Source: Diplonema japonicum
Lineage: Eukaryota > Protista > Euglenozoa: Diplonemea
DNA length: 64,000 bases
Assembly (NCBI GenBank): GCA_964019335.1
Contig: OZ025651.1
Coordinates: forward strand, 186,001-250,000
Direction of reading: 5' to 3'
Made by a program: the position numbers and the translations under genes. This document shows positions 910-19,107 of this stretch, piece after piece (within the stretch, counting starts at the first letter, position 1; every line of letters starts with the position of its first letter). The notes below the pieces were generated by a model. The model was not told the origin of the DNA. It searched no databases and saw only the letters and a program-made list of their open reading frames with translations.

Positions 910-1200
910 GATCTATTTGTGCGATCCTACACGTGCCAGGTGCCGATCGTCGGGTTTGCCTTTCAGTCTGCGCTAAGAACATCTGCCGCAGTCTCTTCAG
1001 AAGCGGTGTTCACGCGCGAACACCCCGGGCCAGGGGCGTCTCAGGATTGGAATGCGATCAAAGCACATTTGACAAAATCCAGCGCCAAAAGCCGCTCAAC
1101 GACAATTTGGTGTTGCAGTGCCTCCTCCAGTTGTGCTGCTGTCGTCTTGGTGTTTCTTCACGCAAGGCCGCAGGTGCGTCCTACGGCTTTCACGTAATAG
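910..1200 (-). pseudogene. Decayed non-LTR reverse transcriptase fragment
   Basis: Minus strand reads ...AAQLEEALQHQIVVERLLALDFVKC, then after a 2-nt shift FDRIP, then LLKRLRQMF. This parallels ALDIEESLLEGKPLVGVALDFAKCFDSVP...ILRALKGMY in the intact RT at 10226-13288. Contains stops and frameshifts. Confidence 0.55.
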
Positions 1201-1982
1201 TACCCCAACACATAAAAAGGGAGAGAGAGAAGGGGAAGAATATGTGGCAAGAATGGAATTCTGAACGGGCACACACACAATAGAGTTGCATCTGCTCACA
1301 ACTCTATAGACTCTCCAGCTTGCAGTATAGAAAAAGATCATTCGGGAAGCCTTATGATCAGAAAGGGGAAGGCCGAAGTACGTCAACTCACATGGCGGTC
1401 TTAGTCATTGCTTACAAAGAAAAAGAAAAGAAAAAAAGCACTTTTTTTTTTACTGATAGAATGTTCTTATTTGAGTCAAAAAAAAAAAAACGGGGAGGGG
1501 AAGCTGAGAAACCAACAAAGACCGTAACGAAAAAAAAGAGAGAGAGAAATAAAATAAAGTTCACCCTTCCTCTCACAGACAACTTACCGATCTATAATAC
1601 ACATCCCCACCATTCTTTTTTTCTTTCCCCCCGCCTAATTCTTGTTTGTTTCCCCTTAACCACTAAAACCGGACGCCAGAGAGGCGTGCAACGCAAGCTA
1701 AATCTGGGCTAGAATCTCCAGAGGTCACTTCTCCATAAATAAACCACTTTGTATGGTTAAATCCTGCCATTTTTTGAATTTCTTAAGGCCTAAAAGTCCT
1801 AAAGGAAATGGGGGCTGTGGGCTTAGTGGTTAAATAAAAAAGATCTACTTTGAACCTTTTGCTGCATTGTATCTACTCCCCTCCCCCTCCCCCCATCACT
1901 TCTTCTTCTCTAGCTTTAGTTCGAGGCTTGCAAGCTTATTGATGTTCGCGGCAAGCAGGGCTTCAATGTCTATTTTTTATTC

Positions 1983-4900
1983 TTAAAAACTTTCCTCCGG
2001 CTTTATTGACCACATACCTTGAGTCCCCCTTAATGAACCCCCGTCAAGCAAGCTGGTACTGCGCGACACCTGTGAGTCCAAAAGGTTCCTGCCTTGTCCG
2101 TGCCCAGACACGGAGAGTGCGTCTTTGAGGGTTTTCGGTCTGTTGCTAGACAACGAAAGGGAACTGTTTTTCCTTTCTAACTCAGCAAGAGGAAGCACTT
2201 CGGGTAAGGTGCCCCTAATAGGTGCGGAGTAAGGCCTGCCGAACCTATCCGCCTTGTCATGGAGAACACGCAGCGGGGGTGACGCAGTGCGTAGTGGTGC
2301 ATTGGTGTGCTTCAACGGGGATAGCATGCGCCTGTGCCTCGTCGTGCTCTGCTCTACTGCCAATGGTTTTTGGAGGATGCTTGCCCCCATGCCCATGAGC
2401 ATGCCCATGCCCCCCCAAGCGTCTGCTGACAAAGACATGCTGTGCCTTTCGGACAGCACCCTCTTCACTGTTCGTATGTCTGCCGTTGCTGCCCTGTTTT
2501 CCAAAGCCTCGACCGACCTCCTCTGCCGTGCCACCTCAACCCTTGGGCACTCATCATCGCTCGCCCCATCCAGCCTCGGTGTTCTTGCATACCTCCCTAT
2601 GCTCGCCACCGTTCCCGGCCGTCCCTCAAACACCTGCATGGTAGACCACGAGTCCTTTGTCTGCGACAAGACGCTCTCTGGCAGGCTCGGCACCCGCACC
2701 CTGGTCCCTTCATCGATCTCCACAATTATCGTCCGCTCCGCCTCGTCGTCGCTCACGGACTTCGCCACTTTTTTCTTTCTTCTCTTCGTTTTCTTCACGC
2801 TCACCTCTGTTACTGTTGACACCTCCGACTGCCGCAGCGAGCAGGGCGTCGCCTCCCACAAGGGTACTTCTTCCTGTGCTGTGTTGCTGCACATCTAACT
2901 GCATACCTGTTCGCTGTGTAGCGGCTCTTGCGAACCGTCGTGCTGCGGGTGAACAAATGTGGTCTCGCCTGCCATTGATTGGCCAAATTCAGACCGCCCT
3001 GGGCTGTACTCCTCTCCCTCATCGACAGGTAGAGAGAAGGACACTGACTCGTCAACAGCATTCTCAACAGTAGGCGACGGCAGTGCCCCTTGCAGCGGTT
3101 CCTCAGCTGCTTGGTACACAGCTGGGCTTGTTGGCCGCATACAAGGGGTGAAGTATTCAGGGGGTGCCAAGGGAGTAGTCTCGCCAAGGAAGTTATGTTC
3201 CTTACCTGTCCACTTGCAGAACCTAGCAGCGGACTCTTTTGAGCAGCCGCAGTCGGGGCAGACACTATGCTCTTGCGACGGTGTCGTGGGCAGAAGGGGA
3301 GCCACGTGCATCAGAGCTTGAGGGGGTGTCGACACTGCTGGGGGCACTGTTGCTGGCTCAGGAACGGATGTCTGCATAGGAACATGGGACTCCCGTGCAT
3401 GTGCATGTGCGTGTGGTACGTGTGGCAGTGACACAGGAAGGGGGACTGGCTCGGGTTCAGGAACTTGCGATACCGGAACAAGTACAGGAACGGGTGCCGC
3501 TATGGGTGCGGGCACCGGAGCAGGCATGGGAGCGTCGAACCCATGTGGCAGTGCCTCAGGAATAGTCGGCTGATGCCGATCATGAGGTGGTGCCGTGATG
3601 CCGTTGGAGGCAAGTGCTTGTGAAGCAAGATAGTTTTGGTCAGGGATATCAAGCGGTAAGTCTGGTGGCATACTTCCCGGGTTGTTCAGGGGGACTTTCG
3701 CAGCTCCCAGGGATACTTCTGACTGCAGAGAGGGCTGCGGCAGCGGGTGATCACCAGTGTGTGGTGTCATGCTCTGCGATGGGGGCTCCTCTTGCAACAG
3801 CCTCGGCGTTTTTTTCGCGCCCTTCTCTGCTTGTATGGCTTCTGCTAGCTTCCTCTCAAGCATCTCGTCTTGCTTTCGTTCTTCGTCCTTTTCTTTCTTC
3901 AGCCGTTCCTCTTTCAGACGCTGCTGTTCTTCTAGCTCTCTTCTCCACTGCAGCTTAGCTTCCTGTTCCTTTTTCATCCTTGCGATGTCGTTGTCCGACG
4001 CTACCACAGGTCGCCCGTTGATCCAGGTTGTTGCCCCGGCAAGGCTTCCTGGAGTAGGACGCATACTCACAGGTTCAGGCTTGGGTGATGGTGGTGGTGA
4101 AGGCGTTTTGTGTGTGGTTTCCTTATCGCCCTGCTGGGCTCGTATTTGTCTCTCCAGTTCTTGACGGTACCGCTCCTGCTTCAACTTCTGTTCCGATCGC
4201 AGCTCAACTTGCGTCTTGCCGATGTTGTCACTGCTTGAGCTCGGCCTGTTTGTATTGAGCTCCCTTGATGAGGGTCTGACGATCGCGTCACGGCTGAGCT
4301 GCTCCCGAACACCCATGGCATCCGAAGGCAGTGAATGTGACTGATGCTGCAGCGGCGCTTGTTGCTCTGCAGCCCTGTTATGGGAGTATGTGTTGTACGG
4401 GGCCTGCTGCTGCTGCTGCTGCTGTTGTTGTTGTTGTTGCATGTACTGCTGCATCTGCATCTGTTGCATGAACATTTGCTGCTGTGCATAGAAGGCTTGC
4501 AGTTGTTCAGGTGTGTAATTGCTTTCGTTTTGCACAGGCACAACAGGCGCCACAGGCTGGGCAGGCGTAAAGAATGCCTCTTGTTGCACAGATGTTGCAG
4601 AAGGATACATCCCAGTCACAGGTGGTGGGTACACGGCAGGGGGTGTTACGTACGCAGGAGGTGGTTGCTGCATGGGCGGCATCACAGGCTCTGCTGGCGG
4701 TGTGGGCGATCCATTCCGCGGAGGAACTACTTCCGAAGGGCCACCACCTGAGGGTTGCTGCTGTGGTCGTTTTTGTTTAAGTTGTTCTTCCAGAGCATTC
4801 TTGTACTCTTCCTGTAACCTACGCTTGTCGTTCAGCTGCGATCCTCTCCTGCCAGCCGGTGCCTCGGCTTTCCCCAAACTCCCGAAAAAGTCCCCCTGCT

Positions 4901-5015
4901 GTGTCACCTGGTTGTCTTTCACCTTCATCTCTTCCTTAATCCTCCGCTGCTCATCTAGCTCCTGTTTGTACTGCCTCTGCTTCGCCACCTTGTCATGCGA
5001 GACACCTCCGATCAT
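1983..5015 (-). CDS. Large Q/P-rich coiled-coil protein with repeated 'Y++ELE.Q' motifs (CCDC66/CSPP1-like, tentative); one 33-nt intron at 2874-2906
   Basis: ORFs 2895-5063 and 1983-2894 are in frame and are joined by removing GTATGCAGTTAG...GCACAG (33 nt, contains the TAG). ATG at 5015 follows a CAG. Motifs YKQELDEQ, YKNALEEQ, YRQELERQ and WRRELEEQ; polyQ near 4404-4440; small CPDCG...RFCKWTG zinc-ribbon-like motif. Confidence 0.75.
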
Positions 5016-5222
5016 CCTGACCACAAGGATGGTATTTTCTTTCCTAACTCGTGAGTGCACCAAAAGCTATTACTTTAGCAGCATAGTTGATGTGACGGTA
5101 GGGGGGTAGTGCTCTGTGGCGATGGCGTGAAGTCGAAGAAAATAGCTAATAGACAACCTTATGAATTACTGGTGTATCACGAATTATTGGGTAGCATCGA
5201 TATACCCCCTGGTATATAGAAC

Positions 5223-8200
5223 CTACAACGTAACTTTATCTTTGAGGCTCTCGTTTGTCGTCTCAAGTTCACTCTCTGAATCTTGGGGCACATGCACCTC
5301 GGGAATCGTATTGAGTAGTTGCTTTCTTCGTTCAATCCACTGTGAGTGTGCATAATGATGGAAGCACATACCTTGCCAATCATGATCCCTATGCCGAGCA
5401 CAACAATCAGCAGGACACCCAGCACACCAACGAGGACCTCTTGGCTTCTATCTTTCGTGCCGGAAGTACCAGTACGGGTGCCCGTAGGAGCGGTGGTAGG
5501 AGTTTCAGTAGGACTTGCAGTCGGGGTTGTTGTGGGACCTGCTGTTGGAAGTGCAGTCGGGGCTGTTGTGGGACCTGCTGTGGGAACTGCAGTCGGGGTT
5601 GTTGTGGGACCTGCTGTGGGAAGTGCAGTCGGGGCTGTTGTGGGACCTGCTGTGGGACCTGCTGTGGGAACTGCAGTCGGGGTTGTTGTGGGACCTGCTG
5701 TGGGAACTGCAGTCGGGGCTGTTGTGGGACCTGCTGTGGGACCTGCTGTGGGAACTGCAGTCGGGGTTGTTGTGGGACCTGCTGTGGGAAGTGCAGTAGG
5801 GGCTTCTGTAGGACTTGCAGTCGGGGCTGTTGTGGGACCTGCTGTGGGAACTGTAGTCGGGGCTACTGTAGGAATTGTGGTCGGGGTTGAAGTAGGGAGT
5901 GCCGTTGGTGCTGCAGTGGGGATAGCAGGAGGACTCGTCGTGGGTACATCTGTGGGCGTGATGGGGGATGCTGTTGCGGGGGCTACTGTAGGATTACCAG
6001 AATAGAACTTCATTTCGAACCCTGCACCTGGCCCTATTAGATCAGACTCGAAAACCACGAGCGTAGGCCCCGTTACTTCGACAGACTGCTGGTCCCCATT
6101 TCTACCGTTGTACTCCACTACAGGGTGCCCTTTGTCCTCGCTGCCCTTGTACACCCACACGTGGTCGTAGCTTACTTCAATGTCGAAAGATGTGAATTTC
6201 AACTGCACCGTTGCGGTGGGTGCGACGTCGAACAGCCACATGCACCTCAGTGAGTTCTCATAGTGGTGTTCCCCGTTAATGTGCACCCATCCGCTAATGT
6301 CGGTGATTTCCACCACCTCCTTGTCCTTGCAGTAGTAGGCGGGCGTTTCACAATCTTTTCCCAAGAACCCAGGTTTGCAGTACTCGCACAATTCGCCTGC
6401 CCAGTTCCCGTGGCAGGTGCAGTGCTTCTCTAAAGGGTCGCCTGACAGGGGGCCACAAGTCCCGTGGTTATTGCAGCTGCATTTGTTGTCACAGTTTGGT
6501 CCGTACATCCCGTGTACACATGTTTCGCATCTAGTACCTTGGAAGTTTGCATCACATTTGCACTGGTTGTTCCCCACACAAACACCGTTGTTGTTGCAGT
6601 AAACCTCACTGGAGCACAGAGAGCAGTCCACATGGTGGTATTTGATGTCACATTGACAAGTACCTTCCATGCATGTCCCCCTTGAAGGACCTCCGCAGTC
6701 CCCGGGGCACCCAATATCGTCTGTGTCTTCTATCCCAGGAGCAGTTACCACCAACGAAAAAGGCACACCATCGTAGGCTCCGTGCTCTACTACGTGGTAC
6801 CCATAAACGTACACGGTGTAGGCCCCAGCCACGGCCTCTGTCGTCACCTGCTCCACAACATTCACCCTGTCGTAGCCTGTTTGTTGTGTCGCCGTCACTG
6901 AACGCACAATGCTACCATCCGCTTTCTTGAGGACAAGGTCCAAGTCGTTGACTAGGGCCTTCGCAGACCCCTTTGCTGCAGGGGGGTCAGACCACACCAG
7001 TGTCACCTTTACTGTCTTCGCAAGCGATTTCGCAATGTTACCGTCTGTCAGGAAAGCGTATTTATATACTCCGTCCTGTCCCAGCGTCTGGTTGTGCGCT
7101 ATCTTGACATGTGTCTTGTCCGTCATCCAATCCTGTGTCCCTGAGAAGTACAAGATGTCTTGCAATGCCATGCGCCCAAACCCTGTGTATGCATCGATGT
7201 ACGAGGCGGCATTGCCGGACCTGCCACTGTGCAGGATCATGGCCTTGACGAGCGTGTTTGCCGGCACCATGCTAGCTGTGGCGTCCTTCTGCCCTCTGGG
7301 GTGCCACCCCTCCATGAAGTACTGACGGATCAGAGCGGCGGCTGCAGAAACAAAGGGTGCTGCCATGCTGGTACCGTGTCTCTTATCAGTCTTACAGGTG
7401 GCGCTGGGTGTCAGGCCACTTGTGTGTGCTGAGGTGATTTGGTTACCAGGTGCCATGATCTCGGGCTTGATGCGGTGGTCCCAGGTGGGGCCAGCAGCGG
7501 ACGTGAATGAACGCGACCTGCCGCTCTCCAGCTGCACGTTCATGTGCGAGCCGACTGCGATGACGTTCTTGGCAGAAGCAGGAGACAGCACACCATCTTT
7601 TACACCGCCGTTGCCCGCAGCAGCGACGACAGTGAAGTCGGAATGTTTAAACATGAACTCGTCAGCCTCGCTGTCGAGAGTGACGTACTTCTCGGGCTTC
7701 CCGTTGCCCCATGAGTTGTGAGAAACCTTGGCGCCGATGTCCCGTCCGGTGGCAAAGTACACGCGCAGGTCGTACGGGAGGGTCAGCCCGATGGAAGTGT
7801 GTGACATGTCGTAGAAGAAGACTTTTGCATCGGGTGCAAGCCCGTTGTAATCAGTTTGCTGGGATAAGGTGTTCCCTGCCAGCGATCCCGTCACGTGCGA
7901 CCCGTGCCCGACTGCGTCTGTCATGTCGATCGTTCCCTCGTAGTTCTCGTATCTTTTGTAGGAGATGATCTTCCTGTGGTCGTAGCTGACGTTGGGGTAC
8001 ACAGCCACGCTCAGCAGTGGATCGGAGAAGAAGCACGACTGCACATCAACACCAGTGTCCCCTACCATGACGATCTGCCCGGAACCTGAGATCTTGCCGT
8101 ACGGGTTGTCCCACAGGGGACGAGCCCCAGGGTCGTCGGACTGGGTGATTGAAGTTGCCATCTTGTTGGTTAGCGTGGCGGGGGTGTACGCCCGCACTAA

Positions 8201-8755: not shown

Positions 8756-9399
8756 TGTGTTTGTAGCTTCCTTCGGTTGGATATGTTGTACAACGAAAGG
8801 TAGTGCAGCAACGGAAAAATAGCAGCAAGCTGGGGGGGGGGGGGGGGGGGGGGAGAACAAAATGTCGGAATCCAGAGTGAATTTTCCCTTGACGTGGGTT
8901 CCGTCATGTGAGGCAATTGTCCTTCGTGTCCTTTTCAATGGGAGAATAGGCACCGAGGATACAAAGAAGAAATGAATCAAAAAAAAAGCTTGTATTTGAT
9001 TCGGTCAAAAAATCAGAAGCAATAAAGAAATGTGTATGATATTTACGAATCAAAGTTGAGTTCTTTCCTTTTTTTTCTCTCTCTTCCCCTTCTACCCCCC
9101 CCCCCCCCCCCCATCCGTAAATTGAATTTACTGATTTGTGCGTGTTCACACGTCTCTTACTTATACTTTTTCCTTTTCCCTCATTTTTCTTCCTAAAGAA
9201 AAGCAACGAAAAAACTCAAGAAAAACTATTAAAAAAAACGGAAGCAAGGGGGTTAGAGTTTGCTAAAAAAAAAAGAAAAATGAACATTATTTTCAAAAAA
9301 AATCTCATTAAATTAAATCTTACCACCCACCCGATCAGGTTCAGGCTTGAGATGAACACCTCTTTACAGCGGCGTTTAGTTTTTCTTCAGCTCCCCTCT

Positions 9400-9858
9400 T
9401 CACGGGTCGCTGAGGTCGTCAAATATATTATCATTATTTTCAGCGTATACATTACCAGACCCCCTACCCCGGACGGCCATTTCCTCCATCTGACCTTGAC
9501 GAAGATTTGCGTAATTCTTGGATTTCTTTCGCCTCACGAGGATCTGCGTGGGGGGGGGAGGGGGGGTTTCACGAGAAAAAGAAAAAAAAAAGAATACCTT
9601 GTATCCCATGATACAAATTACTATCAGCAATATGACTGCGCCTATGTAAGTTGTGTTGCCTAGGCTGCCACCAGAACCACTTGATTGCTTTCCGATAGGC
9701 TTTGGAGACGATGACGACGATGACGCGACTGGTGTTTCTGGTGCCTGAGGGGTCGGTGAGCTGTCGTATTCGGCATCAACAGGCCCGTCGTCAGTGACTG
9801 CGGTGACTGCACACGTAATCTGAACAAGAAGGAGGGTGAGCAGAAACCGGTCCATCAT
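9400..9858 (-). CDS. Small type-I membrane protein (signal peptide, S/T/P-rich ectodomain, one TM); probable 54-nt intron at 9544-9597
   Basis: Signal MMDRFLLTLLLVQITCAVTA and TM YIGAVILLIVICIMGY. The FFFFSF...PPPPP stretch is an in-frame GTATT...CGCAG intron made of T and C runs. The 3' end is uncertain (a further intron is possible). Confidence 0.7.
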   Translation of the reverse strand: MMDRFLLTLLLVQITCAVTAVTDDGPVDAEYDSSPTPQAPETPVASSSSSSPKPIGKQSSGSGGSLGNTTYIGAVILLIVICIMGYKVFFFFSFSRETPPPPPTQILVRRKKSKNYANLRQGQMEEMAVRGRGSGNVYAENNDNIFDDLSDP

Positions 9859-10225
9859 TTTCTTTTTTTTTTTTTCCCTTTCAAATAAAAACTCTCACCC
9901 GAAGAACAGAAAAGATATCGAACGAAAACAAAAAAAAAAAAAGAAAAAAAAAATACCCTGCATACTGGGAAATAGGGGGAAGGGGAGATAAATAACACAA
10001 AAAATCTTACAGGGGGGAAAAAAAGAAAATACAAGAGTAAGTGGTGGGGCACTACCACGAAGTGTTCGGTAACTCAAAGGCGGGGGAGGGCGATGAAAAG
10101 AAAATGGCCTCCCCTCTCCCCTCAGGATTATTTGCTATACCTCCTGTGAAGAGAATTTTAAAAAAAAGAAAAAAAATATATGAGTTAAAGGAAGTCTTTG
10201 TGAGACGCCCCCTTGTTCTCATGCT

Positions 10226-13200
10226 CTACCTGCACCTATCCCCCTTCAGCAGCGGTTTCTCCTTCTTCGGTGGTCGTGCCGGCCTCCTCCCCAGCTTGGC
10301 TACTTTTTCCCTTCTTTCCTTTGCCCATTGCTTCCCCAGCTCCTCCAGGTCGTACTTGGTCTTCGTTGATGCAAAGATTGCTCTTCTACTCCACCCGATC
10401 GCCGCCTTCGTCCCTCCGATTGATCGCAGCGTATGTACTCTCTTGCATGGTTCAGCAGGGAAGGCCCTCCTTCCTTTCACCTTCTTCTGCAGTCTCCCTA
10501 GTTCCCATGTGTTCCACACCTTCTTCATCACCGTGTGCAGTCTCCTGGCCTTCTGTCGCACCTCTGCCAACTCCCCTAGCTTCCCTCCAAGGGATTTCTG
10601 GGTCACGTTTTCGAAATCCAGCGCCAGCTCCACCGTCGACACTGCCGTGCTTCTGTTCCCTCCATACCAGCGCAGCTGCTTGAGCCATTTCAGCACCGGT
10701 TTCGTGTACTCCTTCAGGGTGTTGCCGGTCTGCAGCCTCGCGAACTCCTCCTCTGTTGGTGCTGGGTGTGCCTCCCCCTCCGTGATCTCCAGCCATTGGT
10801 GTGTCCGGTAGATCTGCTGCCTCTTTGCCTGCAAGGCTGCGTCGCGTTCCCCCACCACAGCCAGCAGGTAACGCTGGGTCTTCTCGAGCCTGTCCTTGTC
10901 CTCCTTGGCCGCTTCCCTCGGGAGGATGCCATGGAGCCTCATGCACGGTTCTAGGCCTGTTCGTGTCGTGCCTGCATGTGCCTCCCGTTGCCCTACTTCG
11001 ACAGCCAGTTCGCACTCCCACAGTGCATGCTCCAGGATGTTGGATATCTGTTGCATCTGACCGCATACGTCGCAGCGTGCCGTTGCGGGTTCGTCCTGCT
11101 GCCTCTGCTCCGCCAGCAGCATGCGCTCCAGCTCCGCGACTTCCCCTTCTCCTCCCGCCTCTCTTTCTTCTTCGTCTTCTGAGTCGTCTCGGGAATCTTC
11201 TTCGTCCACCTCATCCTCCGTCGGTGGGATGTGTGCCACTGCGTCCGTCCGCCATCCCCGTGGGTGGATGTAGAAAACCGCGCCTGTGATCACCCTGCGT
11301 AGGTTCCTTGCTGCGATGGGGTCCGACGACGCCAGCTTCCCCCATAGCTCGTTTGTCTCGACAGCGGCTGCCGTCGCCATTCCTTTCATGGAGCTCCGTT
11401 TTCCCATGATGGCCTCCGCTTCACCACGCCTGAGCTTGTCTCTGATGTAGTGTCGGAACCGCTCCTTCTCCATGGCCATGGTGTCCTTCAGCTGGTCCCA
11501 GGTTGCTTGCACCATGGGTAGCCACCTCTGCTTCAGGTTTCCCACCAGGCCCAGCGCCTTCTTCCCTTCCCGGTACAGCTTTGCGATGTCGTTGCAGCGT
11601 GCCCACAGTTGGTCGTCCTTCCTGCATGCCCTGTACATGAGCATCAGTGCTTTGTAGGCTGCTGTCATCTTCGGGTGGTGTGTGTGCCCTGGTAGTGTCA
11701 CGGAGAGTACTGCGCCGGGGCTCCGCGTGCGATACCTCTGGCCCCACAGCGTGTATGTCGTCTCCATCACCAGGAGTTCCATCATCCCCGTCCTTGGCGG
11801 TGAGAAGGGGGCGTCGTACAGGCAGCTTGGCAGCAGTGTGGAGCTGATGATCCGCGCCTTCTGCTGGAAGGACAGCGGGGTCGCCCCCAGCCTGCTCAAC
11901 GTCTTCATCGCTTCCTTGGCCCTGTCGTTGTTGTATTGCTGCTGGCCGTCCGTCCGCAGCTTGGCTCCCAGCACCTCCACTGTCCGCACTGCCTGCAGCA
12001 CTTCACCGTCCACCTTCACTTCCGGTGCCTTGGCGCCTGTCGTAAAGGTTTTGGTTTTCTTTACGTTTAGCTTCATGCCAACCATTTTGCAGAAGTCCTC
12101 CACCGCCTCCACCCCCTTCTGCAGTGCTGCCGCGAGTTGTGACAGAAGGTACGCGTCGTCAGCGTATGACAGCGAGCGGACCCCCGTGCCGTCCTCCACC
12201 TGTTTCATCAGCACTGCCAGTAACGCGTTGATGAGTACCACAGATATGGGGCACCCTTGTAGGATTCCATTTGTCGTGTGGAACTCCTCTCCAACGCCCG
12301 TGGCGTACCTGAAACGTCTCCGCATGCCCGCGTACATCCCCTTCAGCGCCCTTAGAATGCCCGTCTCCATGCCCATGTCCTCCACCAGCTCCATCACTAG
12401 TTGCTGCGGTACGCTGTCGAAACACTTCGCAAAGTCAAGTGCCACCCCGACCAGCGGTTTCCCTTCGAGTAGAGATTCCTCGATGTCCAGGGCGAGGTCC
12501 ATTAGCGCGTCCTCTGTCCCGAAGCCTGTGCGGAATCCGTACTGCTTGTCGTGTACCCACTTCTCCTGCCAGAGAAGGATGTCTGCCAGTCGCGTGCATG
12601 CCCAAAGTCTGTACACCGCTGATGTCACCGTGATGGGTCTGTGCTCCAGCGGTCCCGCGTCGTCGCATTTTGGTACGAGTGTGACCAGCGCCGTCTTCAC
12701 GGCCTCTGGCCATCTCCCGGTTGCTTCGATCGCTTGGAAGAGCTGAGCCCAGGCGTCCAACACCGACTCTGGTAGTTTGCGTAGCTCCAGCATCCTCCAC
12801 CCGTCGATGCCTGCTGCGCTTCTCTTGCTCTTCCTTGCGAGTACCTCTCTCAGCCTCGCTCCCGTGAGCTGCGTCTTCGTCATCTCATGCCGTTGTATAA
12901 ACTTGCCATACTTTGCCTTGAAGGGGGCGAAGGGGGGTTCCGGCTTGTTTTCGTACTTCGAGAAGACGCTCTTCCAGGCTTTGCGCATGACTGCGTCGAT
13001 CTTCGCAGGGTCTGCCACTAGTAACTTACCATCCTTGACTGCCCTGGTCCCATCGCTCTGGCGTTTTCCTCTTGCTACTGTCACCAGCTTGGCCGTTTCT
13101 CTTCCCGATGCCACCTCAGCCAGGTATTCCCGTCTTCGCGTCGTGTTCGACTCGGTCCTCTTCCTCCGTTCTTGCGCTGCCACGGCGTCCTCCATGTCTA

Positions 13201-13288
13201 GGGTTGCTGCCAGCATGTCTTCGATGAACGAGGTGTCCTGCGGTATTGGCTCCGTCGGGACTGCTGCTGCTGCTGCTTCTCTGTTCAC
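10226..13288 (-). CDS. LINE ORF2, RT part: non-LTR reverse transcriptase, zinc-binding motif and C-terminal domain
   Basis: Motifs AAGIDG, HRPITVTSAVYRLWA, QYGFR, LDFAKCFDSV, GILQGCPIS, YADD and LNVKKT; later CDVCGQ...HALWEC. Offset by +1 frame from the APE part. No obvious RNase H motif seen. Confidence 0.95.
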   Translation of the reverse strand: MNREAAAAAVPTEPIPQDTSFIEDMLAATLDMEDAVAAQERRKRTESNTTRRREYLAEVASGRETAKLVTVARGKRQSDGTRAVKDGKLLVADPAKIDAVMRKAWKSVFSKYENKPEPPFAPFKAKYGKFIQRHEMTKTQLTGARLREVLARKSKRSAAGIDGWRMLELRKLPESVLDAWAQLFQAIEATGRWPEAVKTALVTLVPKCDDAGPLEHRPITVTSAVYRLWACTRLADILLWQEKWVHDKQYGFRTGFGTEDALMDLALDIEESLLEGKPLVGVALDFAKCFDSVPQQLVMELVEDMGMETGILRALKGMYAGMRRRFRYATGVGEEFHTTNGILQGCPISVVLINALLAVLMKQVEDGTGVRSLSYADDAYLLSQLAAALQKGVEAVEDFCKMVGMKLNVKKTKTFTTGAKAPEVKVDGEVLQAVRTVEVLGAKLRTDGQQQYNNDRAKEAMKTLSRLGATPLSFQQKARIISSTLLPSCLYDAPFSPPRTGMMELLVMETTYTLWGQRYRTRSPGAVLSVTLPGHTHHPKMTAAYKALMLMYRACRKDDQLWARCNDIAKLYREGKKALGLVGNLKQRWLPMVQATWDQLKDTMAMEKERFRHYIRDKLRRGEAEAIMGKRSSMKGMATAAAVETNELWGKLASSDPIAARNLRRVITGAVFYIHPRGWRTDAVAHIPPTEDEVDEEDSRDDSEDEEEREAGGEGEVAELERMLLAEQRQQDEPATARCDVCGQMQQISNILEHALWECELAVEVGQREAHAGTTRTGLEPCMRLHGILPREAAKEDKDRLEKTQRYLLAVVGERDAALQAKRQQIYRTHQWLEITEGEAHPAPTEEEFARLQTGNTLKEYTKPVLKWLKQLRWYGGNRSTAVSTVELALDFENVTQKSLGGKLGELAEVRQKARRLHTVMKKVWNTWELGRLQKKVKGRRAFPAEPCKRVHTLRSIGGTKAAIGWSRRAIFASTKTKYDLEELGKQWAKERREKVAKLGRRPARPPKKEKPLLKGDRCR

Positions 13289-14579
13289 ATTCCTTATTGT
13301 GCAGAGTGGTCGTGCTCAGGCTCCCCTCGTCCATTGCCCGTTCCAGTTGCTCTCGTAATGAACGGGTCTTGAGCCTCAGCTTCTCCAGTCGGGCCTGCAT
13401 GATTGTAGCCGCCCCGATCGAGCCTGTTGTTGTCGGTGCACACACATTCTTGTTCTTCGTGCTTATGTGTTTGCCCCTTCCAACGTATGCTGCCCTCCCT
13501 GGAGTCCCTACCGGTTGTCCTATCAGGAGATCTTCTGTGCATCGGGAGAGTGTTTCGAAGGCTTCTGTGATTCGGCCCTCTCGCAAGTGCAGCTGGAAAT
13601 GACACGCTTCAACAGCCTCTGCGCCCTGACCTTCTGCCGGCTCCTCTGCTGCTTCCAGCCCCTTCGGCAGCATGTACCTCTGTACCTGCAGACTGAACCT
13701 ATCGAGTTGTAGTCGGACTGTGAGGGTTCTGTGGTCGGTTCCTTTGACTAGCTTGTATGCGCTGCAGTCCGTGATGGCCGGCACCGCCTCTGGGTTTGCC
13801 AGAATCCTGTCTATCCGTGTGGCGCAGTTTTCCCGTACAAACGTTGGTTCTGGTTGCTCGCCCCTTCTCATCTTTGCGCATAGCTCCGCTGCATCAGTCC
13901 AGCCCGTCTGCAGCGCCTTGCACAGTTCTGGAGACCTGTCCTCGTCAGTGTTCAGGTCGCCGACAACGAGTATGGGTACGTTGCCGAGCTCCCTCGTCTT
14001 CTTCTGCAGGACGTAGTGGAGGAGGGTCTCCCTCTTTGCCGTTTCTTCTCGCCCTGCTCCCGACGGGCAGTAAACCGAGATGATGTGCAGCCATTTGCGC
14101 TTGCCGTCGATCGCGACCTGCGTGTGCAGCCACCTCCGGCTTTGCTCCTCAGGTTGGTCTGAGGTATCCAGTGTTCCTGGTAGTGCGGTCCTGGGTTCTC
14201 GGATGAGTGTTGCGAGTCCCCCCCTCTGTGCTACCCAGTTCGATGCGATGCCCTCGACCTTCCTCCCCGGCTGCGGTGGCCCCCACATCGGCTTCCACTT
14301 CTTCTTCTGCTTCACCTTGCCAAGCTCTCGTTCTATTTCTTGTTGGCCTGCCAGGGTGAGCGCTGTCTCCTGTGTACATATGACGTCCATGTCCAGCTTT
14401 GTGACCTCCTCAAGTTGGTTGCGAAGGGAGGCTACGTTCACCGTCGATATGTTCATGTACGTGGGTGCTGGTCCAGGGTTTGGTTGTATTCCCTGAACCG
14501 TGAGTCTCGCGAAGTCCTCCGCCTCCTCTGACCCCGGTCTGCGCTTCCCCTGCCTCAGTTCAGCACCTTTCCGATGCAT
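13116..14579 (-). CDS. LINE ORF2, N-terminal part: 2A-like peptide plus apurinic/apyrimidinic-type (EEP) endonuclease
   Basis: GIQPNPGP followed by ISTVNVASL, VICTQET, ISVYCPSG, VGDLN, RIDRIL and TDH. The nearest upstream ATG (MHRKG, 14579) overlaps the end of ORF1. Confidence 0.9.
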   Translation of the reverse strand: MHRKGAELRQGKRRPGSEEAEDFARLTVQGIQPNPGPAPTYMNISTVNVASLRNQLEEVTKLDMDVICTQETALTLAGQQEIERELGKVKQKKKWKPMWGPPQPGRKVEGIASNWVAQRGGLATLIREPRTALPGTLDTSDQPEEQSRRWLHTQVAIDGKRKWLHIISVYCPSGAGREETAKRETLLHYVLQKKTRELGNVPILVVGDLNTDEDRSPELCKALQTGWTDAAELCAKMRRGEQPEPTFVRENCATRIDRILANPEAVPAITDCSAYKLVKGTDHRTLTVRLQLDRFSLQVQRYMLPKGLEAAEEPAEGQGAEAVEACHFQLHLREGRITEAFETLSRCTEDLLIGQPVGTPGRAAYVGRGKHISTKNKNVCAPTTTGSIGAATIMQARLEKLRLKTRSLREQLERAMDEGSLSTTTLHNKECEQRSSSSSSPDGANTAGHLVHRRHAGSNPRHGGRRGSARTEEEDRVEHDAKTGIPG

Positions 14580-16333
14580 GCGCAGCACTGTTCCCTCCTG
14601 CATGTTTCCAGGGTGCACACCGCTGCCTTCCCTCCCTTCAGCAGCGTCTTGCATGAGGCGCACTGCCCCTGGGTGGCCTTGTACGCCTTCGACCACGCAT
14701 GGGTGTGCATCTTTTGCTTCTTCTGTGCCTGCGATTGGGGGGAATCCATGCCCTTCCCTTCCGAGGACTTCGTCGGCTGCCTGTAGGATGGCGTGCCGTC
14801 CGTCTCCATCGGTGTCGGGGACCGGGATTCTGGAGGTGTCACGCTCCTTGGCCGTTTCGTGGGGGACGCGGCTGTGTTCTTCTTCGGCGATCCCTGTGCC
14901 TTCCTCCTCCTCGGTGATGGTGAAGCCTCCGGAGGTGTCCCGCTTCTCTGCCTCTTCGTCGGGGATGCTGGAGATGCTGGGTTCGTTGCGATTACCTTCT
15001 CCCTCAGCTCCCTGTGCCTCAGCGCTTGCTTCTTCAGTGTCTCCCTCAGCTTCTTGTTGTCCTCTTGCAGCCCTTTGATGATCTGCTCCAGCTTCTGCAT
15101 CTGTTGTTGTATTCCTGTCGGCATCTGCTCTTCCTTTTGCTCTTCCTTTCCCTTCTCCTTCTGCGGTTTGTGCTTCTGTTCCTTCTGCCCCTTCTGCTGT
15201 GCCTTCGGGTCCTTCTTCTGTTGTGCCTTTGGGTCCTGCTTTTGTTGTGCCTTCGGGTCCTGCTTCTGCTGTGCCTTCGGGTCCGCCGCTGCCCAGTACT
15301 CCTCGCCTTTGTCCTTGCCATAGAAGCAGAGGAACTCCGGCTTGGAGTACTTGGTGTCGTTGTTCTCGTTTGGGTCCTTCCGCGTCTCCCCTTTTGCCAC
15401 CACCATCCGCAGCGGTTGGAGTTTCCATGCCTCTGTCAAGGGCATTTGGTTCTCTCCTACTTGGACTTCCCCGAACGGGGGTCGGACAACCGCCTGGATA
15501 ATGGCGAGCTGTTTCCCTTTCTTGGGGATCATCCGGAGCACCTCCGCACCTTCCCACCCCTTCGTGCGGATCACCTCCTGCACCTGCCCTGCTGTTACTC
15601 CGCGCGGTACGCAGTGGAGGTCGTACTTCGTCTTCTTTGCTCCCCCTGCTTCCACCAGTAGCCCTGCCTCCCGTGCCCTGTCTGCCGCGTGCGTCCTTGC
15701 TTCCCCTTCCTCCATCACCAGCCCGACCCCCCTCCCGTTGCTGATGATGGCTGCCTCGGGCCCCGCCGCCTTCCGTGCCTCCGACACGCTCCACGTCTTT
15801 AGCCACAACGGTGGCGCGTCCTCCTTCCTCCTCCTTCGTTCTTCGATGTACATACCGGTACCTTCTGCACCCCCGGCCTGTTTCGCTTTCTTCGCGTCGC
15901 TCGCCGACAGATAGACCAGGAGGTCCATCTTGGTGAGCTTGCCGTCCCACCCCTCGCCCCTCGGGTCTGACAGCCCTCGGGTCCCGATCCCCATGGATCC
16001 GAGCACCTTCTTCGTGTGCTCTCTCGCGTCGGCCTCGACCTGCTCCCAGCCTTCCCCCGCCGCCGGTCGCCTCCATACCACTCTCAGCACCTCGGTGGCG
16101 TTCTCGTCTTCGTCCTCGTCCTCGTCCTCGTCCATCCAGCGTTCCTGCTGCTGCTTGCCATGTGTCTTCGGCCATCCCGCCTCTGCCGTTACCCTCACCG
16201 CGCGTACCACCTTCCCCTTCCCTGGTCTCGCCCGCGCTACCTGCACCCACGAAGGTGCTGCCCCCTGCTGGGGTTTTTGCTCTCCTCCTGAGGGAGAAGA
16301 CCCAGGGCCACCACTTGGAGGTTCCCCAGCCAT
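14555..16333 (-). CDS. LINE ORF1 (592 aa): basic protein with DPKAQQKQ repeats, coiled coil, SP-rich region and C-terminal Cys-rich zinc finger
   Basis: ATG at 16333 (MAGEPPSGG). 24-bp repeats at about 15190-15285; coiled coil QQQMQKLEQIIKGLQEDNKKLRETLKK; C-terminus CASC...VCTLETCRREQCCAC. Confidence 0.85.
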   Translation of the reverse strand: MAGEPPSGGPGSSPSGGEQKPQQGAAPSWVQVARARPGKGKVVRAVRVTAEAGWPKTHGKQQQERWMDEDEDEDEDENATEVLRVVWRRPAAGEGWEQVEADAREHTKKVLGSMGIGTRGLSDPRGEGWDGKLTKMDLLVYLSASDAKKAKQAGGAEGTGMYIEERRRRKEDAPPLWLKTWSVSEARKAAGPEAAIISNGRGVGLVMEEGEARTHAADRAREAGLLVEAGGAKKTKYDLHCVPRGVTAGQVQEVIRTKGWEGAEVLRMIPKKGKQLAIIQAVVRPPFGEVQVGENQMPLTEAWKLQPLRMVVAKGETRKDPNENNDTKYSKPEFLCFYGKDKGEEYWAAADPKAQQKQDPKAQQKQDPKAQQKKDPKAQQKGQKEQKHKPQKEKGKEEQKEEQMPTGIQQQMQKLEQIIKGLQEDNKKLRETLKKQALRHRELREKVIATNPASPASPTKRQRSGTPPEASPSPRRRKAQGSPKKNTAASPTKRPRSVTPPESRSPTPMETDGTPSYRQPTKSSEGKGMDSPQSQAQKKQKMHTHAWSKAYKATQGQCASCKTLLKGGKAAVCTLETCRREQCCACIGKVLN

Positions 16334-16379
16334 GATTGATAGAGATTTTGTTAATTCCAACCCAATATCCAGCCCCTGG

Positions 16380-16413
16380 CTAAAAAAAGAAATATATAAA
16401 GAGACAAAGGAGG
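16380..16413 (-). promoter_or_regulatory. Candidate spliced-leader trans-splice acceptor (polypyrimidine tract + AG) in the LINE 5' UTR
   Basis: Sense sequence CCTCCTTTGTCTCTTTATATATTTCTTTTTTTAG ends about 46 nt before the ORF1 ATG. It is the only such pyrimidine tract I saw in the otherwise purine-rich element. Confidence 0.55.
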
Positions 16414-16544
16414 CCAGTGTTGGTGGTGCCTGCACAGTACTGTCTACTGAATTACAGGGAGCGCACGTCGGCCGAGCTGTAGCTTCTTCTGCATCCTTAA
16501 TGCGTGCAGCTCAGCTCAGCTCAGCCCAGCCAGGCGCCCCGGGT

Positions 16545-16666
16545 AACCAAGATTCTGTGCTCGTTCAGTTTTCTGCCTGTTCGTCACCCTGAGCATCTGC
16601 TACCGGTGATGACCTACGAGGGGGTCAACACATCGGATGAACTTCTTTATATTTCCATGCACCACC
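16545..16666 (-). ncRNA. HDV-like self-cleaving ribozyme at the LINE 5' end
   Basis: Sense strand: P1 GGTGGTG (16666-16660) pairs with CATCACC; P3 ACC/GGT encloses L3 CCCTCGTA; GG follows P1 (P1.1). This is the same order and motif as the HDV core. The predicted cleavage site is 2 nt from the TSD. P2, P4 and J4/2 could not be assigned unambiguously, so the downstream boundary is approximate. Confidence 0.75.
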
Positions 16667-16935
16667 GGAAGAAAAAAAAAATAACTTCAGTGTGCACCCA
16701 CCTGATAGTAAAGAAGAACGAAAGAACAAAAAAAAACTCAAATTAACATGCAAACTCCCAGAGCGAAAGCCGCATGCCAAAAAAAAAACAAGAAAAGGTT
16801 GTTTCACTCTATTATGATTTCTTTTTTTCTTTTTCCTTCTTCTTTTCCATGTTCTTTTTTCCTTTTTTTTCCCCCCGCTCACAATGCCGCCGCCATCATG
16901 AATACTGTATCAATACAAACCCAAACCGCACACAG

Positions 16936-19107
16936 CTACGTCACAATCCGTTGAAAGGGCGACGGTGAATCGAAGATAGGCTTCTCAGAAGGATTCCCAA
17001 GAGGGTTGCGGTCCCAAATAGGATGCTGGGTGCTGACAAGGACCAACGGAGGAGACGTAAGGGGCGCAGGGGGTGACTTATCAATGCTATGGATAATGGG
17101 CTCCTTGATGACTGTGTCAAAGGCAGCAGTGTGGGTGGTCAGGAGGCTTGGGGTGCCCATTGCGAGAACAGCGGGGGGTGCAGAAAGCAGTTCTTCCTTG
17201 AAGGGATCAGGCGTGCTCGGTGGCAAGGGGAGGGACTGTGCTGTCCCATCCGAGAAGGAGGCAACCTCCTTCTTCTTCATCCATGTGATGTACGCCAATA
17301 GCAAGCAAATGCACAGCAGTGCCACACCCAACCCCACCACCACCAGAACCCACACAGGGATCCCGTCATCACCCCCACTTCCTCCTTGAGGCGTGCTCAC
17401 AGGTGTCGGGGCTGCAGCATCTAAAAGCACTGTTCCAGGGTACGAGTACTTTGTCCCGTCACTGAACTGCACTTGGTACACCCCGTTCTTAATACCCGTC
17501 ACCATCCCTGACTCGCCAGTGTACTTCGCCATCCCAGGTACCCACGACAGCCCTGCCGCCTCCACTTCCGCCATCACCTTTGCCGCATCGTTCACCACAC
17601 GTACGGAGTCGCCCATTTCGTACAGAGGCACCGTCTCTGTGCTTGTCACGCCAGGCACCACTACCGTCTCAGTCACGTTCACACTCTCTGTGGCCGTCTC
17701 GGTCCGCACCGTTGCTGTGAAGGTGGCTGTCCGTGTTTCGCACACAGGCACCACGGCCCCCACCTGCGTCACACCAGACGCGTCGCACCTGCACACAAAG
17801 TCGTTCAACGACAGTACAGATGTGTTCCCATCTGTGCAGCTCTGTCCTGTGCCGCACCTGTCGAATCTGCACTCATCGTACTCTGTGGTGTGTGGTCTGG
17901 TGTTGTGATGGCGTAGTACATACCACATATTGCAGGGCTGCCGCCTACCTGGGAAGGCCCTCCATTGGGGCAGCTGCACACGTAGTCCTGCACACTGCCG
18001 AGGGTCGTGTTCGGGTCGTTGCACGTCTGCCCCGCGAAGCAAGGGCTCGGGTTGCACTCGTCCAAAACGGCGGTGGCTGTGTTGATGTTGCTGTGCCATC
18101 AGGTTACGCATACCGCACGAAGGCACAGGGCCGCCCACCCTTAACAGCAACGGCTGGTTGTTGCAGGTGCATGTGTAGTCGCCTATGGAAGCGACTGTCG
18201 AGTTAGGGTCGGCACACGTCTGCCCTGCGTGGCAGGGGTTCTTGATGCACTCGTCATCGTCGCACTTGGGCACAGGGGCACCGATGGCAAAGACAGAGGA
18301 GGTAAGACAGGTGCAGACAAAGTCGTAAAGCGAGTCGATGCGCGGTGTGGGGTCGGAACACGACTGGTCGACGCCGCAGAGTGCACCGGTGCATTCATCG
18401 TAGACAGGAACAGTGGGTGTGATCTCACGTGTGAGTGTTGGGGTGATGGGGAGTGTGAGAGACTTCGTGGTGGTTGGTGTAGGCGGGACCTGCACAGTGT
18501 CGGAAATTGTGGATGTGGGAGTAGGCAGGGTTGCGGTGAAGGTGGCTGTCGATGTGCAAGAGCACTGCCCCTTGTAGCCCGATGGGACGCCACAATCCGT
18601 GGACTGGCCGGCTGCACACCCGCAGTCATTGACATCGCAGAACTTCGCCTTGCAGTCCCACGCACCTTCATCGGCAGGAACCTCCCCCACGTTGCCCCAG
18701 GCCTGCACGGTGCTGGTTCCGATTCCGTTCTCGTGTGTGAAGTCGTTAGGGGGTGAGGTGAGGGCGGCTTCCGTGTAGAGGACACACCTAGTGAGGTTCA
18801 CCCCTGACTGCACACGGACACCAAGGCATGAAGGGATCGAGGTGCAGATCGTCTCGCACTGCCCCTCACCTCCTGTGGTTTTGTACCCCTCAGACATACT
18901 GACGTACATGGGTGGCACATTTCCTAGTGTGTCCCTGCACTCCCCATTCCCTACCACAGGATACCACTGGTAGCACCCTCCCTCCCACAGGCACTTGCTG
19001 TCAGCGACGCATGCTGCCTCCACAATGGCGTCACACCTCAGACCCACAACGCTCTGTGCAAACAGGCACAACAGCAACCATGCCCCCAGTAGTTGCTTCA
19101 TCTGCAT
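16936..19107 (-). CDS. Type-I surface protein with four EGF-like DEC..C..GQ.C.D repeats, Thr-rich spacers, a Mind-bomb-type SH3-like repeat and TM; introns at 18077-18113 and 17883-17923
   Basis: Signal peptide; TM VWVLVVVGLGVALLCICLLLAYI. Removing two GTATG...ACAG introns (37 and 41 nt) restores the third repeat DECNPSPCFAGQTCNDP, which lies in another frame. Confidence 0.85.
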   Translation of the reverse strand: MQMKQLLGAWLLLCLFAQSVVGLRCDAIVEAACVADSKCLWEGGCYQWYPVVGNGECRDTLGNVPPMYVSMSEGYKTTGGEGQCETICTSIPSCLGVRVQSGVNLTRCVLYTEAALTSPPNDFTHENGIGTSTVQAWGNVGEVPADEGAWDCKAKFCDVNDCGCAAGQSTDCGVPSGYKGQCSCTSTATFTATLPTPTSTISDTVQVPPTPTTTKSLTLPITPTLTREITPTVPVYDECTGALCGVDQSCSDPTPRIDSLYDFVCTCLTSSVFAIGAPVPKCDDDECIKNPCHAGQTCADPNSTVASIGDYTCTCNNQPLLLRVGGPVPSCGMRNLMAQQHQHSHRRFGRVQPEPLLRGADVQRPEHDPRQCAGLRVQLPQWRAFPGRRQPCNMWYVLRHHNTRPHTTEYDECRFDRCGTGQSCTDGNTSVLSLNDFVCRCDASGVTQVGAVVPVCETRTATFTATVRTETATESVNVTETVVVPGVTSTETVPLYEMGDSVRVVNDAAKVMAEVEAAGLSWVPGMAKYTGESGMVTGIKNGVYQVQFSDGTKYSYPGTVLLDAAAPTPVSTPQGGSGGDDGIPVWVLVVVGLGVALLCICLLLAYITWMKKKEVASFSDGTAQSLPLPPSTPDPFKEELLSAPPAVLAMGTPSLLTTHTAAFDTVIKEPIIHSIDKSPPAPLTSPPLVLVSTQHPIWDRNPLGNPSEKPIFDSPSPFQRIVT

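Follow-up and report, generated by a model that had tools for sequence, protein, structure and literature searches.

A LINE with a predicted 5′ ribozyme and a stop-free −1 reading frame, probably inserted into the tail of an older SINE, in the genome of Diplonema japonicum

The L1Tc/ingi retrotransposons of trypanosomatids, whose partners are NARTc, RIME and SIDER, carry a hepatitis delta virus (HDV)-like ribozyme at their first bases and a 2A peptide directly before the domains for apurinic/apyrimidinic endonuclease (APE) and for reverse transcriptase (RT) (PMC3185411, PMC4035085, PMC3708506). R2, RTE and Baggins elements, together with the R2-derived short internally deleted elements (SIDEs), are co-transcribed with upstream DNA and self-cleave at their first base (PMC3414825, PMC3774820). 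Long interspersed nuclear elements (LINEs) with two open reading frames (ORFs) and a 2A site have also been described, namely CR1-26_BF, CR1-53_BF and CR1-1_LG (Odon et al. 2013, PMC3708506). In this study, we report a LINE copy and a neighbouring short interspersed nuclear element (SINE) on the minus strand of a 64,000-nt stretch of the diplonemid Diplonema japonicum (assembly GCA_964019335.1, contig OZ025651.1, positions 186,001 to 250,000), which is called the window hereafter and whose coordinates are used throughout. Diplonemids are among the most abundant marine eukaryotes. It must be noted that LINEs need much ORF1 protein (ORF1p) and very little ORF2 protein (ORF2p) from one RNA and that, to our knowledge, the route to ORF2 is still unsettled, even for human L1.

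The locus is best explained by two independent retroposon insertions in tandem, in which a young autonomous APE-type LINE would have entered the T-tail of an old ribozyme-headed SINE; taken jointly, we give the whole of this explanation a probability of about 0.7. Copies were searched for in the source genome (62.5 Mb, 132 contigs). The LINE, designated family A, has four other full-length copies at 99.9% identity, and the sequence shared by the five extends in the window from 16376 (GGGGCTGG...) to 10160 (...CTCATATAT plus a T-run), that is, 6217 bp on the minus strand, to which all large ORFs between 10.1 and 16.7 kb belong. Approximately 25–31 fragments at 94% identity or more were also found, nearly all with the common 3′ base, and at least 25 insertions exist; this 5′ truncation with a common 3′ end is the classic LINE pattern. 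The first-pass annotation had placed the upper limit of the element at 16668. The DNA upstream of 16376 is different in each full-length family A copy; therefore, that limit was too far out, and all five copies begin at 16376. The window copy is flanked by an 11-nt target-site duplication, TTTCTTTTTTT (upstream copy at 16382–16392, downstream copy at 10171–10161). The pyrimidine tract at 16380–16413 is the T-tail of the SINE, which doubles as the target-site duplication of the LINE, and the SINE-like element itself (16382–16666, minus strand) is a separate, old and diverged copy of about 285 bp, recognized from at least 40 scored copies. With APE and RT in one ORF, dispersed 5′-truncated copies and target duplications, family A is an APE-type LINE, and its window copy was later inactivated by a 2-bp deletion. 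A second LINE family (B) is about 77% identical to it. The earlier idea of a composite LINE thus holds as to the combination of ribozyme, spliced leader (SL) addition, ORF1, 2A-like site, APE and RT, absence of RNase H and T-rich end, but the anatomy given for it was wrong in three places. The same modules are present in the other family A copies and in sister families.

ORF1 (14555–16333, minus strand) codes for 592 aa followed by a TGA stop, as previously annotated, and is intact in the window and in copies L001–L004. It is 55% identical to the ORF1 of family B and 28% to that of a third family (C), and shows a conserved C-terminal Cys6 motif in which C558, C561, C573, C578, C583 and C586 are invariant (C-x2-C-x11-C-x4-C-x4-C-x2-C). 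ORF1 gave no Pfam match. A structural model of low confidence (mean pLDDT 50) has beta-alpha-beta domains at approximately residues 80–300 and a 44-residue helix; its Foldseek matches were weak and mostly to tandem-RRM proteins, and an Atlas search gave only a weak PHD lead (0.78). The model is consistent with RNA binding by ORF1p, without being proof of it.

ORF2 contains an APE endonuclease domain at 13731–14444 (PF03372, E 1.3e-10) and an RT domain at 11963–12649 (PF00078, E 2.5e-26), both on the minus strand as is the whole element. Its C-terminal region has a C-x2-C-x11-H-x4-C motif (11012–11074) whose residues C1170, C1173, H1185 and C1190 do not vary among 12 aligned relatives. In copy L001, whose ORF2 is intact, APE covers residues 47–283 of this ORF and RT residues 645–873. 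No match to RNase H (PF00075) was obtained in the window or in the intact L001 ORF2, so that the Pfam searches agree with the earlier assignment of an APE-RT protein lacking RNase H. Among proteins of solved structure, the RT was closest to human LINE-1 ORF2p (E 2.5e-24) and then to R2 (5e-20). The nearest proteins are LINE ORF2s from Diplonema papillatum and transcriptome sequences, at 31–51% identity, and L1Tc/ingi are absent among 76 sequence relatives of family A, those with a named source being all diplonemid. In the window ORF2 is not intact: a seven-copy alignment revealed that two bases are missing after approximately 13297, and the shifted frame runs into a premature stop at 13118–13116 (break at 13116–13298). 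Both bases are present in six other copies and in the read contigs of three DNA runs (X2, X3, X4), the deletion being private to this copy. Counted from PNPGP, ORF2 has 1419 codons in L001–L004, where it is intact, versus 455 in the window copy.

At the 5′ end of the LINE there is an HDV-like ribozyme fold of 110 nt (16267–16376, minus strand), in which P1 starts from the first base of the element (G1 = 16376) and all helices are fully paired, as checked by script. Its helices are P1 GGGGCU/GGCCCU, P2 GCUGGGG/CCCCAGC, P3 ACC/GGU with L3 UCCAAGU, P1.1 GG and a P4 of 8 bp, and its joining segments are J4/2 GCAAAAA and a 40-nt J1/2 that includes a hairpin and the ORF1 AUG. The features which define HDV-like ribozymes are those of Webb et al. 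2016 (PMC4908430). The nested double pseudoknot (P1, P1.1, P2, P3, P4) is formed, P1 beginning with the first base of the element in all of A, B, C, E and F; L3 starts with UCC, providing two C for P1.1, and GG follows P1′; and J4/2 starts with GC directly after P4 in A, B, C, E1 and F, which matches the catalytic C of HDV.

The helices were compared among families in a covariation table made by script. The P2 strands are GCUGGGG/CCCCAGC (A), CCCGGCGC/GCGCCGGG (C), GUUUCC/GGAAAC (E) and GCUGCC/GGCAGC (F); a C-G pair of P1 in family A is flipped to G-C in family C, which is a compensatory change; and the sequence of P4 is unrelated from family to family (A, B, C, E, F). P1, P2 and P4 thus covary over five families, while the P3-L3-P1.1 core remains constant. 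E and F are two more repeat families with a ribozyme at their head: family E (L065, L066, L072, L073) has a compact fold of 76 nt with J4/2 GCGAAAG, and family F (L062, L064) has a (CA)n/(TG)n hairpin within J1/2. In a further locus, L063 (G000:C1:936283-936805), the first approximately 100 bases, directly upstream of the family F ribozyme core, are read as N. In a descriptor scan, all full-length copies of families A, B and C had the fold beginning exactly at their first base, and the chance rate of the descriptor was about 0.7 matches per 128 kb of shuffled sequence. Given this low rate and the start at the terminal base repeated across families, the match is not due to chance. One more descriptor match in the window, at 59146 on the plus strand, was dismissed as being at chance level.

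By its fold, the 5′ end of family A appears to be an HDV-like ribozyme, and self-cleavage is predicted. The ribozyme core doubles as code for PPSGxPG, a conserved stretch of ORF1. No promoter is evident in the element, which would be transcribed from upstream, the 110-nt ribozyme probably cutting just before G1. Such a cut would explain the common first base of the full-length copies, whatever lies upstream of them.

The junction between the LINE and its target had been interpreted as a trans-splice acceptor owned by the element. The pyrimidine tract is target DNA and only the junction AG, made up of an A and the G1 of the element, is constant, so that the acceptor belongs to the element only in part. 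In the window, a 5-nt filler, AGCCA (16377–16381), lies between target and G1, its last A and G1 forming the AG, as revealed by copy comparison. All 15 full-length copies of families A and B without SL have 1–5 variable bases ending in A before G1, so that the AG is always there, and in 12 of them a T-tract is found at 10 nt or less upstream, being absent in the other three. Two copies, L008 (family A) and L043 (family B), start with the 37-nt SL sequence, which occurs 212 times in the genome and not once in the control; next to L004, GT comes after the SL sequence, as it does in SL RNA genes. These SL-headed copies indicate that SL-joined LINE RNA existed and was reverse-transcribed. The T-rich target with the junction A-G1 resembles a trans-splice acceptor and might act as such, which the SL-headed copies show in part. 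As a separate observation, the full-length family A copy at L004/L039 (G000:C2:150558-150680) has no T-tract at its junction, and an SL RNA gene-like unit (SL exon, GTACCC...) is situated about 85 nt upstream of it. Additionally, a LINE of another family (L055, G000:C27:628500-635400, at approximately nt 2600; RT 46% identical) is headed by the SL sequence, its ribozyme descriptor match being weak and probably due to chance.

At the other end (10160–10228, minus strand), the ORF2 stop TAG (10228–10226) is followed by a 50-nt 3′ untranslated region closing with ...CCTTTAACTCATATAT and a T-tract. The LINE ends as (TA)n(T)n at 10160, and this, together with the T-rich target duplications, confirms the T-tract end that had been proposed. 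T-rich duplications of 9–14 nt were also found in L002, L003, L005, L006 and L007. Target duplication accounts for part of each T-run, L003 and the window copy being examples. In L001 (23 T) and L004, no upstream tract matches the T-run; therefore, a variable oligo(T) tail exists. A sense strand that ends in U calls for an A-rich primer at the nick, which fits with sense-orientation insertion into T-tracts. The 5′ truncations, the 9–14-nt duplications and the oligo(T) end point to insertion by target-primed reverse transcription into T-tracts, in which the oligo(T) end would pair with the A-rich nicked strand.

The 2A-like peptide of family A (14469–14516, minus strand) reads ...DFARLTVQGIQPNPGP, with the motif QGIQPNPGP and NPGP at 14480–14469, and ends 8 codons before the APE match; that of family B is ...DFARLTAQGIHPNPGP. 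In the last nine codons of the site there are four synonymous changes and one replacement between A and B, a proportion which indicates purifying selection on the 2A-like peptide, and the 25 codons before NPGP are well conserved between both families. Relatives have GD(V/I)(E/H)xNPGP or DGIEPNPGP at the same position and others an OTU protease or ubiquitin, and the position of NPGP with its upstream context is kept in family B and at least 12 relatives. As judged from these alignments, the family A motif is homologous to the canonical 2A of the relatives. The 2A-like peptide of the first-pass annotation is therefore retained as a conserved NPGP just upstream of APE, but it is non-canonical.

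The frame of ORF2 is −1 with respect to ORF1 and is free of stops from element base 2 to the 2A-like site (14481–16375, minus strand), with 631 open codons before PNPGP in every full-length copy; its whole open length is 2050 codons in L001 and, in family B, 2036. Codon shuffles of ORF1 predicted 7.2 stops in the −1 frame of family A, where none is found (P(0) = 2e-4), and 10.0 in family B, where there is again none and 0 of 5000 shuffles reached 0. As controls, the −1 frame of ORF2 itself has 17–19 stops in approximately 1400 codons in families A and B, and the −1 frames of the ORF1s of families C and D, which follow an in-frame design, have 4 stops in 561 codons and 15 in 578, respectively. 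Between A and B, identity is only 52% at the third positions of ORF1, and it amounts to 35% for the −1 peptide versus 54% for ORF1. Both families are therefore nearly independent samples, in which openness has been kept and sequence has not. In A as in B, the second AUG along the RNA belongs to the −1 frame (nt 203 in A, nt 136 in B), with no AUG between it and the first one. The ORF2-frame AUG nearest to the ORF1 stop (14577–14579, minus strand) is 38 codons before NPG|P and lies within the end of ORF1, as in the overlapping ORF2 start already annotated.

On the basis of the above, the following course may be outlined. ORF1p would be made from the first AUG, inside the ribozyme, and would bear the RRM-like folds, the long helix and the Cys6 motif. 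In the least certain step, a few ribosomes would gain access to the −1 frame upstream, for which leaky scanning as far as the second AUG is the simplest route; they would read a stop-free and otherwise unconstrained leader, and ORF2p would be released at NPG|P. A minority of ribosomes would thus translate a “disposable leader” of approximately 570–600 codons over ORF1 and shed it at the 2A-like site before reading ORF2, a proposal that is the simplest reading of the open frame and that we put forward tentatively and at somewhat less than even odds. If true, it would represent a novel means by which a bicistronic LINE adjusts its ORF1:ORF2 ratio, and the presence of 2A in a two-ORF element would acquire a purpose.

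Several points weigh against the explanation that we prefer. Transcription, cleavage, SL addition and translation are all deduced from the DNA sequence. Rfam gave no HDV-type match at E values up to 10 in the window region 9000–18000 or in four SINE loci, its models representing neither pseudoknots nor a 40-nt J1/2. At the junction, the SL-headed copies read ...TTTATTG+GGCTGG, with three G, when splicing at A|G1 predicts four, and the A that precedes G1 in all non-SL copies would not be encoded by a ribozyme-cut RNA. Around the ORF1 AUG, position −3 is A and position +4 is G, a context that would not favour leaky scanning if mammalian rules held. Finally, the D and E of D(V/I)ExNPGP are absent, family A having G-I-Q-P-NPGP and family B G-I-H-P-NPGP, and published 2A assays found a low level of activity for E→Q and a very low one for E→H (Odon et al. 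2013, PMC3708506).

This last point leads to the possibility that the motif has lost its activity, is left over from an ancestor that combined an in-frame UGA with 2A, and is now only an N-terminal part of ORF2p. Both key residues have changed (D→G; E→Q or H), more than in the DGIEPNPGP of the in-frame relatives, and non-conservative changes of E abolish activity in the published assays (PMC3708506). However, the predominance of synonymous changes in the last nine codons (4 to 1) and the conserved upstream context speak for a function, and D→Q and E→Q variants were active in some contexts, the D→Q variant in one of those assayed (PMC3708506). We regard a relic as a serious candidate, albeit a rather unlikely one.

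With respect to how ORF2 is reached, the main rival to entry into the −1 frame far upstream is a start with a short leader at 14579. ORF2 would then be translated from this AUG, by termination-reinitiation or an internal start, with a 38-aa leader and the 2A-like site, and the open frame before it would have another cause or be an accident. An ORF2-frame AUG is found 24–50 nt before the ORF1 stop in both families, the 25 codons before NPGP are conserved, and there are precedents in the stop-start coupling of SART1 and in the short-leader 2A of L1Tc and ingi (PMC3708506). Nevertheless, the AUGs near the ORF1 stop are not homologous codons in A and B, and the short leader leaves unexplained the absence of stops over approximately 590 codons in two families near third-position saturation, when the controls have 4–19 stops. 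For these reasons we consider it unlikely. A −1 frameshift within ORF1, producing an ORF1-ORF2 fusion to be split at the 2A-like site in the manner of retroviral gag-pol, would fit the −1 position of ORF2, and sister families appear to fuse both ORFs over an in-frame UGA followed by 2A or OTU, so that fusion with later release would be a scheme already in use within the clade. It is very unlikely, since no slippery heptamer X XXY YYZ is common to A and B, the ORF1 of family B contains none at all, and a single shift site needs an open frame only downstream of itself. Independently of these alternatives, in a family B locus (L036, G000:C78:258060-268059, nt 1017-7574) the open ORF2 frame extends upstream into an Fe/Mn superoxide-dismutase-like ORF, with 2185 open codons; on its sequence, this is a LINE lying in frame behind the start of a putative host gene.

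The SINE belongs to an abundant family (loci L009–L028), of which the window holds an old, internally deleted copy. In alignment, the copies open with GGTGGTG right after T-tracts, are about 340 bp long and close with ...CCTTTAACTCATATAT and a T-run, the last 17 nt and the T-tract being common to SINE and LINE. Their first approximately 130 nt form an HDV-like fold with P1 GGUGGUG/CAUCACC, the P3-L3 segment ACCUCCUCGUCGGU, GG for P1.1 and C-GAA before the P2 strand; in the window this fold occupies 16666–16573 (minus strand). The core pattern of this ribozyme occurs 1167 times in the genome versus 234 in the reversed control, mostly in the SINE. The HDV-like ribozyme that had been flagged at 16545–16668 as the 5′ junction of the LINE is therefore the 5′ end of the SINE, although the LINE does have a fold of this type, its own, at 16376–16267. 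With the same 17-nt 3′ end, the SINE may borrow the machinery of the LINE. The reading of 16378–16668 as the LINE's own 5′ leader, suggested by its position next to the LINE in the same orientation and by its good HDV-like core with a pyrimidine tract and then AG, has a practically negligible probability and was ruled out by copy comparison, given that the upstream DNA is unrelated in the four other full-length A copies and in ten family B copies, that this segment is a separate repeat with its own T-tail at hundreds of LINE-free sites, and that the 11-nt target duplication encloses the LINE at 16392–16382 and 10171–10161. Upstream of the SINE, the segment at 16721–16793 (minus strand) is 90% like the flank of a 5′-truncated family A copy at G000:C69:194888-194956, a likeness that suggests a further repeat or a duplicated region.

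Families A and B can be compared with at least 10 other families of the same genome, in which ORF1 and ORF2 lie in one frame over a single TGA, followed by 2A or OTU. These sister families share with A a homologous Cys6 ORF1, a 5′ ribozyme, a release device before APE and the same type of 3′ end. The in-frame UGA design was found in families C and D and in L088–L091; in A and B, ORF2 is instead in the −1 frame and UGA readthrough cannot reach it. A and B also differ from the sister families in a linker of only about 25 codons from the ORF1 stop to NPGP and in the ORF2 frame being open to the 5′ end. In one sister family (L088, G000:C98:7300-11400, at approximately nt 3229-3380) the motif reads ...QGIEPHPGP, in which H replaces the N of NPGP; an in-frame TGA lies upstream of it. 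In the family D copy L031/L032, ORF1 and ORF2 are in frame over the TGA and APE begins about 20 codons past the stop with neither 2A nor OTU between; the 3′ part of this copy is apparently interrupted by another insertion. A single genome offers two contrasting designs, an in-frame UGA with 2A or OTU in most families versus an open −1 frame in A and B, which can be tested with reporters. Beyond this genome, a metagenome scan gave 10 related loci, none with a ribozyme descriptor match at a plausible 5′ end; these loci are very GC-rich, so that long open frames in them are uninformative.

Regarding novelty, full-text searches of the literature turned up no paper describing LINEs of diplonemids or the ribozymes or 2A sites of such elements, and the only diplonemid genome paper found, that of D. 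papillatum, left transposable elements for later (PMC10161547). The suggestion that the element may be undescribed is upheld to this extent, but the combination of ribozyme and 2A is known from L1Tc, and that of two ORFs and 2A from CR1. A two-ORF LINE with 2A is rare, not new; it is the stop-free −1 frame that could be new in mechanism. The family A locus would also illustrate how a promoter-less retrotransposon lives where genes are co-transcribed and every mRNA depends on the SL: the ribozyme would set the 5′ end of the template, T-tract targeting would recreate a pyrimidine tract and AG at each insertion, and the SINE would copy the same tricks.

Among the known systems, the metazoan CR1 elements CR1-26_BF, CR1-53_BF and CR1-1_LG resemble family A in having, besides an ORF1, an ORF2 whose APE is closely preceded by a 2A-like site; a ribozyme, a stop-free overlap and a T-rich end are not described for them in PMC3708506. 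The R2-derived SIDEs are internally deleted and non-autonomous and keep the ribozyme and the 3′ end. R2 itself is site-specific for ribosomal DNA, uses a restriction-like endonuclease and has a single ORF, whereas family A is dispersed and its ribozyme core also encodes the PPSGxPG of ORF1. L1Tc/ingi share with family A a euglenozoan trans-splicing host, the ribozyme, the 2A before APE-RT and short partners with the same ribozyme-type 5′ end. They differ in having one ORF, RNase H and a poly(A) tail, none of which is found in family A, and in that their first 77 nt are also a promoter. Family A, for its part, possesses a distinct ORF1 whose start lies within the ribozyme, lacks RNase H, ends in oligo(T) and is targeted to T-tracts.

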